Part shown: piece by piece, positions 33,316 to 36,300 of the stretch
Layout of the letters: every line of letters begins with the position of its first letter
Numbering within the stretch: the stretch's first letter is position 1
From: Hormiphora californensis
Taxonomy: Eukaryota; Animalia; Ctenophora
NCBI GenBank assembly: GCA_020137815.1
Contig: CM035356.1
Span: forward strand, 7,564,001-7,628,000
Length of the DNA: 64,000 nucleotides
Reading direction: 5' to 3'
Translations under genes and position numbers: made by a program
The notes under the pieces: generated by a model
Seen by the model: only the letters and a program-made list of their open reading frames with translations
Database searches by the model: none
Told to the model about the DNA's origin: nothing

Positions 33316-36300
33316 TCAATCAGAGCACGACGATGAGTCCCGGAGGACCCCGCTACTGCTGCCCGTCGGTTGTTGTTGTGAGTGGGGTGTTATCAGGTGA
33401 CGTTGTAATGATAACACGTTCTCGTTCGTCGTTTTCACCTCTGTAGAGAGAGAGAGAGAGAGAGAGAGAGAGAGAGAGAGAGAGAGAGAGAGAGAGAGAG
33501 AGAGAGAGAGAGAGAGAGAGAGAGAGAGAGAGAGAAGACCAGAAGGGGAGGGAACCGGCCTCCCCTCTCTGAGAAGAGCTTCGTCTCCTCTCAGAATGCT
33601 CGAGGGGGGGTAAGTTGAGAGGAGGAGGGTCTTTGGTAAAGCTAGCTTTGTTAGCTTACTATTTAGCGCCTAAATATACCCCGTACTAAGAACGGGAGCC
33701 TTGGCAACTGCCGGCAAGGCCAAGCTGTTGCACTTTGCAGTTGGTAACAATGTTAAAACTTTTGAAGTATGGAGGGTGGATCAACAGCGGTATGTACCTT
33801 TAGCGAGAGTGAGAACAAGCTTTTCGAGCTCATCTAACCGTTTCCCCAAGGTATCAGCTAGTTCTACACTATTTGTAAAACTAATCCGCCTCTCGGTTTC
33901 CTGGGTATCATCATCTTTGTCCGGTTTGGAATCCCTAGCAAGCTTCTTCCGGGCCGCCTAGGTGGGGGACTGTTAGCTCGGGGAGTGGGGGAGAATTATA
34001 TAGGGTGGTATAACGAGAGGGCGGTAAAGAGATGGTTGGAGAAGGGTGCTGCACGAAATGTGAGTGGTTCTAGCTGAGTAATCTAGTGATCTAGCTGAGT
34101 AATTGTCCGACTCCGATATTACGGGGAAAAGTGCATCTTTTCCTAAAATATAGCTTCTACTTCTATTAGAAGTTCTAACTCTTACTCTTAGAGCACTGTC
34201 ATTAATTCTGGAAATCAGAATAATTCTAGAGATTTCTAGATGATGCCATTGAAAGGTGGCTATATTCTAACCCTCCTTTACGAGAGAGGGGATTGAAAGG
34301 TGGTTATGAAAAGATGGTTTGGTGTTATGAACCTTGTGTGGTGTTTTATCATGATCTCCAAGGTTGTACCGTGATGATGATTGGTGTTGTTCAGGTGGTG
34401 AATGATGGGATAATGGTGGAGAGAGGATATCCACATAATCAATATGGAATTGTAGATCATGATCAAAGTATGATACCATCTTGAACGCATCCAGTCTTTT
34501 CTCTGCACACTGCAGATTGAGAAGTTCTTACTCCTTCATAAAAACTAACGTTACTCCTTCATAAATATTAACGTTACCGGCCCTTCATAAACATTGACAA
34601 GACATAAACACAGCTATGTGATACTTGAAATGTGTAAGCAGACAGCACGTTTTATACAACGCCGGATAGTGATACATGATTCAATATAGTGAGTTTTCAT
34701 AAATACATAATTGGAATATTCCAAACTCTACTTTTTTAGTTCGTCACTTTTTACAACATCACAAAGTAGAAGAGAAAAGAAGACCACGCACTATAATAAT
34801 AATACAATAGATGGATAGACTATAAAGAGGGAGGGAAGACTTACTTCAGGGGTTTCAGCTCTCGGCGATTGGTTATTCAGGTTTAACTTTTTTCTGGCAG
34901 CCTGTAGAGAGAGTGATAGGACACACTAGTACTCAGCGGTAGAGTGAGTGTGCGGGTATATCGGCATATCGCTCCAGAGAGTGATAGGACACACTAATAC
35001 TCAGCGATGTTTTGAGATTATCTCTCCAGATAGTTCTCTCTCTCTCTTCACGGCCGGGTAGAAGGTTTACACACGAAGATAAGAGGTGTGCTTTATCAGC
35101 AGGGCCATATTGAGACTAGTAGTGTATATAGTGCTTTGCGTGTAGATAGATTACGGCGGGATCCTCGGTCGCTAGCTAGGCGATATTTCTTTTTTGGGCA
35201 AACAAAAATTCAGCGGTGCTGTAAGGAAACTCAAGACGCTAAAAGATTCTAAGAGCTGTGTACTTGGCATAAGAGTAAGAGAGATGGAGAATAAAGTGCT
35301 AAAAAGAATAACAGAGTCAAGAGAAAGAAAGGTACGCGTATAATAATCAACAAAAAAAGTAATCCTAGATGTTTAGCTTAACAGGAAATGTATAGGATGT
35401 CTCGTATCGATATTGAGATGATATTGTGCGGAAGAGCAAAGTAATGTATCAGCGTTACATACATAATATGATATGGGCTATAATGTTAACATGTTGGGTG
35501 CACAAACAGTTAATAAACAGTAGGTTAACACATCGACACCGGATATAGTATGTTTGAAGGTTAACAGATATGCAAACGTCAAAGATAACAGCGAGAAAAA
35601 AAGAAGATAACATCTCTCAAAAAAGAGAATTACAACCACTCGATTATTCTCACTAAAAACAGCATTATTTTCTCTCTCGCACACACAGTGACAATTGTCG
35701 AACCGGCCCCAAATTGAAATACAGTGAAATCCTGAGGCCGGGGTCCGACTGTATCTGGGATACTATCATACACACACAATTGTGCCGCTATCACCCTCCT
35801 TAGATCAGGATGATAGCGGCACTTGTGTTACCATGCAGTGATCAGTGATCTTACCTCTTTGAGCACCTCCCTCATTTCTGGATAATCGTTCAGAGCGTGT
35901 AACAAATCCTCTTTTCGTAAACAGAACAAATCACTGTATCCCACACTCCTTACATTTGCTGTTCGCCGGTTGCCGTTCTTCCCCACATTCAGCAGTGAGA
36001 TCTCGCCAAAGTAACTACCGTCAGAGAGGGTGGCGAGGGCCCTGCCATCGTCAGCCGTTACTTGTAACATGCCTAGTGGGATATAGATCTGTCAGAGCAT
36101 TGGCCAGAAAGATATAGATAGTAACTTGTTAACTCTAGGCAGACTTAAAAAATGCACTATGGGGTTATCTATTTGAAGAAAAGTGGTACTGAAACCAAAA
36201 ATAACCTTGTTTGACGATGAACATTTCCCGCCCAATATCCCCTTTTCTGCACACGTAGTCCCCTGGTGAATATACCTGGCGAGAGAGAAAGGTACAGAGA

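Follow-up and report, generated by a model that had tools for sequence, protein, structure and literature searches.

An optional 57-base exon probably rewrites the end of the C helix in a ctenophore A-type CNG channel

In a 64,000-nucleotide stretch of the genome of the ctenophore Hormiphora californensis (assembly GCA_020137815.1, contig CM035356.1, positions 7,564,001 to 7,628,000; hereafter the window, with positions counted from its first letter), the minus strand carries the 3' end of a cyclic nucleotide-gated (CNG) channel gene in which two exons both begin with AARKKL. Our analysis indicates that the first of these is probably an ancient, conserved and optional exon of 57 bases that rewrites the end of the C helix, exchanging Asp for Asn at the position equivalent to D604 of bovine CNGA1, and that leaves the coiled-coil tail in place. 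With this cassette skipped, the C helix would end AARKKLARD, with Asp at the D604 position; with the cassette included, it would end AARKKLNLN, with Asn at that position and A-R-D at 602-604 turned into N-L-N. Inclusion would also add a Pro-rich, probably unstructured spacer of 10 residues, and would place 19 more residues between the binding domain and the old helix end (AARKKLARD), with the unchanged coiled coil behind it. The parts of the gene on which the argument draws are listed here, with the source of each assignment in brackets.

35855..36071, minus strand: CNBD (cyclic nucleotide-binding domain) exon, encoding the end of the beta-roll, the B helix and the first half of the C helix, and ending in phase 0 (translation)
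34908-34938 and 34976-35006 (span 34908..35006), minus strand: two copies of a 31-base repeat, directly upstream of the cassette acceptor (repeat search)
34845..34901, minus strand: 57-base in-frame cassette exon of 19 residues, starting AARKKLNLN (splice sites, phase and orthologue inserts)
33958..34844, minus strand: intron of 887 bases that separates the cassette from the tail exon (homologue searches, RNA contigs and shuffles)
33798..33957, minus strand: constitutive tail exon, encoding AARKKLARD, followed by an acidic linker and by 17 residues of the heptad segment (its first half), plus one base, and ending in phase 1 (translation and an RNA contig)
33441..33797, minus strand: last intron, with a (CT)n run at 33441-33535 that ends at the acceptor (removal seen in RNA)
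33316..33440, minus strand: last coding exon, with the second heptad half starting (E), a Ser-rich end ...CSD and the stop codon TGA at 33318-33316 (translation and a spliced RNA contig)

Annotated lobate orthologues carry the cassette as an optional insert

We reached ctenophore relatives of the gene by scanning with the pore exon, without a profile, and then running a word-based search. The orthologues are Bolinopsis microptera XP_063683220, XP_063683221 and XP_063683222 (isoforms X1, X2 and X3) and the Mnemiopsis leidyi gene ACHWQZ_G002521. Window exons were searched singly, and the public orthologues P0152, P0159 and P0163 stood in for the Hormiphora protein in whole-protein searches and folds. 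All orthologue exons map colinearly onto the window (tblastn). Between ...EVLKE and AARQKLARD, some isoforms of the lobate orthologues bear a 19-residue insert that is identical to the window cassette at 18 of 19 residues, and the borders of this match in the window are exon borders, with an in-frame stop before the match and unrelated sequence after it (tblastn).

The insert is present in XP_063683220 and XP_063683222 and in Mnemiopsis KAL5268693, KAL5268703 and KAL5268706 (P0155, P0156, P0159). It is absent from XP_063683221, from KAL5268694, KAL5268697, KAL5268701 and KAL5268702, and from the metatranscriptome-derived proteins P0162 and P0167-P0169. In one Mnemiopsis pair, P0156 and P0166, the N-terminus is shared and the insert is the sole difference. 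Identity between the window and Bolinopsis runs from 72/72 residues in the CNBD exon, which is equally identical (72/72) in the Mnemiopsis orthologue, through 18/19 in the cassette to 45/53 in the tail exon (isoform X1) and 14/31 in the last exon. Because the cassette is conserved so much better than the two exons that follow it, we argue that it has a function.

A sequence-only reading of this DNA had taken the exon at 34901 for the start of an alternative tail, with the coiled coil removed from the Asn form. Neither part agrees with the orthologues: every insert-bearing isoform continues into the AARQKLARD exon and keeps the heptad tail, and the isoforms and cDNAs with and without the insert all end in that same tail. 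Mutually exclusive or alternative terminal exons are contradicted by five ctenophore proteins (P0152, P0155, P0156, P0158 and P0159) in which both copies of the nine-residue exon start, hereafter the 9-mer, occur in a single protein.

The two exon starts are a probable duplicated pair

That two exons starting AARKKL exist, at 34901-34845 and 33957-33798 on the minus strand and with good splice sites, was borne out. The donor directly after 35855 is gtaaga; the cassette exon has the acceptor ctctctacag before its first G and the donor gtaagt after its final GAA, is in phase 0 at both ends and has a length that is a multiple of three. Across all six frames of the 64-kb window, AARKKL is found at only these two places. 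The six codons that encode it differ between the copies at 6 of 18 bases and all six differences are synonymous, an outcome that random changes would give with P ~4e-5; the pair is thus not a chance likeness, and each copy seems to be under constraint as coding sequence. In the window the two 9-mers differ solely at residues 7-9, A-R-D in one and N-L-N in the other, which are positions 602-604. To judge by sequence, the cassette most likely arose when the start of the next exon was copied in part and in tandem, and has since diverged.

The variable residue falls on the position of CNGA1 D604

Residue 72 of the CNBD exon aligns with residue 595 of bovine CNGA1 (phmmer; 7o4h_A, 690 residues), and the ninth residue of the exon that follows is therefore position 604. 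K596 and D604 belong to the C helix of CNGA1 (PMC2233835). An ungapped alignment had earlier put the Asp and the Asn at this site, and both HMMER and a structural alignment uphold it. By HMMER, kkLNLN of the insert-bearing orthologue P0152 aligns gap-free with qiLMKD of human CNGA3. By VIA-align, the model of P0159 aligns with the bovine rod channel over 46..516 to 151..608 (7o4h_B) and over 51..514 to 154..606 (8bx7_C); both ranges give an offset of 92, which makes N512 of P0159 equivalent to bovine 604. In AlphaFold2 models the C helix spans H496-513 with the insert (P0159) and H501-517 without it (P0163), ending at the Asn and the Asp, respectively. Behind the cassette's helix end, the spacer in P0159 is predicted as coil and is followed by the long tail helix.

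In vertebrates each gene has its own fixed residue at 604, Asp in A1, Asn in B1 and Met in A4 (PMC2222909, PMC2233835). In bovine CNGA1, D604N lowers the fractional activation that cGMP achieves, from 0.96 to 0.08, and lifts the value for cAMP from 0.012 to 0.05 (PMC2222909). By analogy with this mutant, inclusion of the cassette would be expected to lower cGMP efficacy and to relax the discrimination of cGMP over cAMP. Since the tail is unchanged, the cassette form should still co-assemble with the skipped form, and mixed tetramers of Asp and Asn forms could grade the ligand response in a group reported to lack CNGB.

It is possible, if somewhat doubtful, that the cassette is used mainly to lengthen a flexible linker and to supply a phosphorylatable or partner-binding SPRAETPE, with consequences for assembly, trafficking or the coupling of gating. 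The spacer is conserved to the same degree as the helix part (SPRPETPE in lobates, SPRAETPE in the window), and the prediction shows it as low-confidence coil flanked by two helices; a second copy of the 9-mer is kept downstream of it, and in one paralogue family both copies persist alongside a shorter spacer. Against this, the differences between the 9-mers fall exactly on 602-604, including a known purine-contacting site, and phosphorylation is suggested purely by the shape of the Ser-Pro/Thr-Pro motif. An effect through the linker and an effect on ligand selectivity are compatible and do not exclude each other.

Both forms are A-type channels with a heptad tail

The CNBD exon matches Pfam cNMP_binding (PF00027) at 1.8e-08 and 34.7 bits (cut-off 27.5), and the orthologues that map onto the window match PF00520 (Ion_trans) and PF00027 above their cut-offs. 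Against CNGA1-3 the same exon reaches 83-87 bits, against CNGB1/3 it reaches 40-50 and against HCN channels at most 39; full orthologues score 473-487 bits against A subunits and 255-264 against B subunits, and an orthologue model superposes on A3 with Z 27.7 and 49% identity and on B1 with Z 23.9 and 35%. By these comparisons the window gene is an A-type CNG channel, and both of its predicted splice forms are A-type. The proposal that one gene yields A-like and B-like subunits is contradicted by bits, identity and Z alike, and B-type identity was rejected on the lower B scores together with the heptad tail kept in all cassette-bearing orthologue isoforms.

In the tail, hydrophobic residues recur at 3-4 spacing (L, L, V, L, V, T, V, L, L) over ~4.5 heptads, the register across the last junction having been counted by eye from the separate exon translations and one split codon. 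AlphaFold2 predicts a long tail helix in both orthologue isoforms, with and without the insert, at a predicted local distance difference test (pLDDT) score of 77-85 over the heptad segment. We found no match to the Pfam C-terminal leucine zipper (CLZ, PF16526) exon by exon in the window, and four ctenophore proteins searched at full length gave none at E<=1 either; the CNGA control P0014 matched at 6.5e-25 and 87.8 bits. With a profile built from 103 classical tails, the ctenophore tails scored 10-13.6 bits and the best shuffle 11.1; hhalign returned a probability of 1.7%. Membership of the tail in CLZ was rejected on the Pfam, home-built profile and hhalign results. Of the C-terminal zipper proposed for this gene, a heptad-like segment with predicted helicity thus stands, and demonstrable membership in the Pfam CLZ family does not. 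Lagman et al. 2022 (PMC9803222) reported that Mnemiopsis has CNGA and CNGC genes, that CLZ occurs only in classical CNGA genes and that CNGB occurs only in animal groups having CLZ; a CLZ-negative ctenophore tail agrees with their account.

Paralogues resemble fixed states of the cassette

Paralogous proteins were taken from lobate ctenophores and European Nucleotide Archive (ENA) assemblies. The lobate paralogues P0003/P0151 (also P0173) have two constitutive copies, AAIKRLALN, two residues and then PERKRLTRN, both ending in Asn; the paralogues P0153 and P0170 have a single copy, AARKRLAHD, ending in Asp. Both lobate families carry the same kind of heptad tail, and together they look like fixed 'cassette-in' and 'cassette-out' states. 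Asn combined with a coiled coil is therefore a normal state in the clade, which undercuts the idea of a B-like, zipper-less Asn form. In the window's genome we found no separate P0151 orthologue, the best matches being the window gene itself. We offer as a tentative extension that the cassette is a splice-controlled ligand-tuning switch, born by tandem duplication and in place since at least the pleurobrachiid-lobate ancestor, with its states later fixed in the lobate paralogues.

Transcript evidence and the case against cassette use

RNA from parts of the gene was found solely in aquatic metatranscriptome runs, against which we compared 33545-36280 (2,736 bases), a stretch chosen to avoid long (CT)n runs. 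A contig of the oligo-dT run X3 reads 33798-33862 and then the reverse complement of 33440-33411; the join of 33798 to 33440 means that the last intron is removed and the coiled-coil tail expressed. Another contig of run X3 lacks intron 36072-36204 (36071 joined to 36205). Contigs of run X1 over 33852-34624 are colinear with the genome and unspliced, and this run is possibly DNA; the colinear intron contigs of runs X1 and X2 might stem from retained introns, nascent RNA or DNA contamination. When the C-terminal part of the orthologue was used as query, four ctenophore clusters matched, none of them from Hormiphora. Because no contig crosses 35855, the case for use of the cassette in this species is made from orthology, conservation and splice signals, and on these Hormiphora presumably splices it as lobates do.

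Several observations weigh against an optional exon that changes ligand discrimination. No RNA contig crosses 35855 to 34901, 34845 to 33957 or 35855 to 33957, so that neither of the two junctions predicted from the sequence, 35855 to 34901 and 35855 to 33957, was seen among the metatranscriptome contigs, and the only contigs over the cassette (run X2, 34829-35126) are unspliced. The orthologue isoforms are pipeline annotations; all the metatranscriptome-derived proteins that we found are without the cassette, so inclusion may be rare; and a degenerate cassette pattern had no match in contigs from Joint Genome Institute (JGI) metagenomes. Confidence in the AlphaFold2 models drops to ~42-47 right behind the helix end, and the ligand effect is an extrapolation from a vertebrate channel of ~48% identity.

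Two further explanations were weighed. It is highly improbable that the 34901 exon is spliced to 34509-34267, giving a His/Pro-rich terminal tail that is exclusive with the 33957 tail and makes a zipper-less, B-like subunit. The frame at 34509-34267 is open to a stop, is phase-compatible with the 34845 donor and has an AG before 34509; run X1 contigs over 34241-34624 mean that the stretch may be in RNA, and an 11-residue segment briefly resembles one in the tail exon. Yet 0/12 orthologue isoforms and cDNAs have such a tail, those with the cassette continuing into the AARQKLARD exon, and its 80 residues found no homologue among proteins of 44-140 amino acids and no similarity to any orthologue isoform aligned. 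An open stretch of at least 81 codons arises in 28% of shuffles of the 887-base intron, and the same intron also contains open stretches of 85, 86 and 97 codons. No spliced contig was found at the proposed 34509 acceptor, where the sole contig, from the possibly genomic run X1, reads through unspliced. The His/Pro exon of the sequence-only reading is thus unsupported. As a duplicated tail, the 11-residue resemblance was likewise rejected, since it comes down to six residues and has no orthologue counterpart.

Hardly credible, finally, is a 34901 exon that persists in Hormiphora as a silent relic, never spliced in, with the Asp form made alone: its support is that only unspliced contigs and no spliced read cover the exon and that the cassette-free form dominates the metatranscriptome-derived proteins, and against it stand 18/19 identity to the lobate insert beside 14/31 in the last exon, six base differences from the sister copy that are all synonymous, and intact, strong splice sites with a length divisible by three, none of which a relic would have retained across the cydippid-lobate split.

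Other features of the gene and genome

The 31-base direct repeat upstream of the cassette acceptor occurs twice, the copies being 97% identical and 68 bases apart (repeat search of the window), and its downstream copy supplies the pyrimidine tract of that acceptor. This repeat could act in the control of splicing, or as a decoy. At 33441-33535, at ~36300-36460 and in many other introns, long (CT)n runs end at or near acceptors of this gene and may be their pyrimidine tracts. An AATAAA lies at 33110, downstream of the last coding exon. Within the 887-base intron, just upstream of the 34509-34267 frame, a 23-base minisatellite is present in three copies at 34528-34598; its unit is also arrayed on two other contigs (G000:C2:8169565-8169778, C2:8324839-8324993 and C6:3697125-3697184).

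Further upstream, two tandem minus-strand exons, 38210-38881 and 37124-37771, each cover the stretch from S4-S5 through the pore and S6 to the C-linker. The lobate orthologues have a single pore segment, with which the two exons align at 61% and 65% identity, and because only one pore version occurs in the seven aligned Mnemiopsis isoforms, the duplication may be specific to the window's lineage. The Mnemiopsis isoforms P0154-P0156, P0159, P0163, P0165 and P0166 place at least five different N-terminal first exons on a common body. Elsewhere in the genome there are two more CNG-type loci, G000:C6:5472417-5472635 (L002/L008) and G000:C6:3441600-3443058 (L003). The scores of L002/L008 are near-equal, 57.6 bits against A-type and 50.5 bits against B-type chains, which bears on the claim that ctenophores lack CNGB.

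Discussion

The channel described here resembles vertebrate CNGA1 and CNGA3 in its Ion_trans and cNMP_binding domains, in ~48-49% identity and Z of 27-28 to solved structures, and in a C helix of the same length, which in the cassette-free ctenophore form ends at the aligned Asp. It differs from them in that the 604 residue of the vertebrate channels is fixed per gene, whereas the ctenophore gene would supply either Asp or Asn, depending on an optional exon. The Asn of the cassette form matches Asn1201 of vertebrate CNGB1 at the equivalent site. Judging by the title under which Pages et al. 2000 is cited in PMC2233835, and by the effects of D604N (PMC2222909), a role of the Asn form in raising the relative cAMP response of mixed tetramers is possible by analogy. 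Unlike CNGB1, however, the cassette form is A-type, keeps the coiled-coil tail and is set apart from its sister isoform by 19 residues alone.

The Bolinopsis and Mnemiopsis orthologues share with the window gene the exon order, an identical CNBD exon, the optional 19-residue insert and the tail. They are automated annotations with no described function, and the seven aligned Mnemiopsis isoforms have one pore sequence where the window gene has two pore exons. The lobate paralogues P0003/P0151 and P0153 have the same heptad tail, and their apparent in and out states are constitutive; they are, however, separate genes, and their insert is of 11 residues, not 19. The ctenophore tail is like the classical CNGA CLZ (PF16526) in lying a few tens of residues past the C helix, in heptad spacing and in a predicted long helix, but it has no profile match. 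The classical CLZ is a parallel three-helix coiled coil and fixes a 3:1 stoichiometry; what the ctenophore tail shows of this is its heptad spacing and a predicted helix.

In the open-access literature we found no description of these isoforms, nor of a splice-controlled change of a CNG C helix. The isoforms are already in public automated annotations, and splicing of ion channels is a known kind of event, here aimed at a ligand-discrimination residue. If our interpretation of the cassette is correct, ctenophores would set CNG ligand discrimination by splicing, at a site, 604, where vertebrates set it gene by gene, and would obtain from one gene the graded cGMP/cAMP response that in vertebrates takes distinct A and B genes. 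A mini-exon, used optionally, would replace a helix end and spare the elements of assembly, which would make the two forms a natural minimal isoform pair for the control of agonist efficacy by the helix end and the coiled-coil link. The finding bears on the diversity of cyclic-nucleotide signalling in sensory and neural cells of early-branching animals without CNGB.

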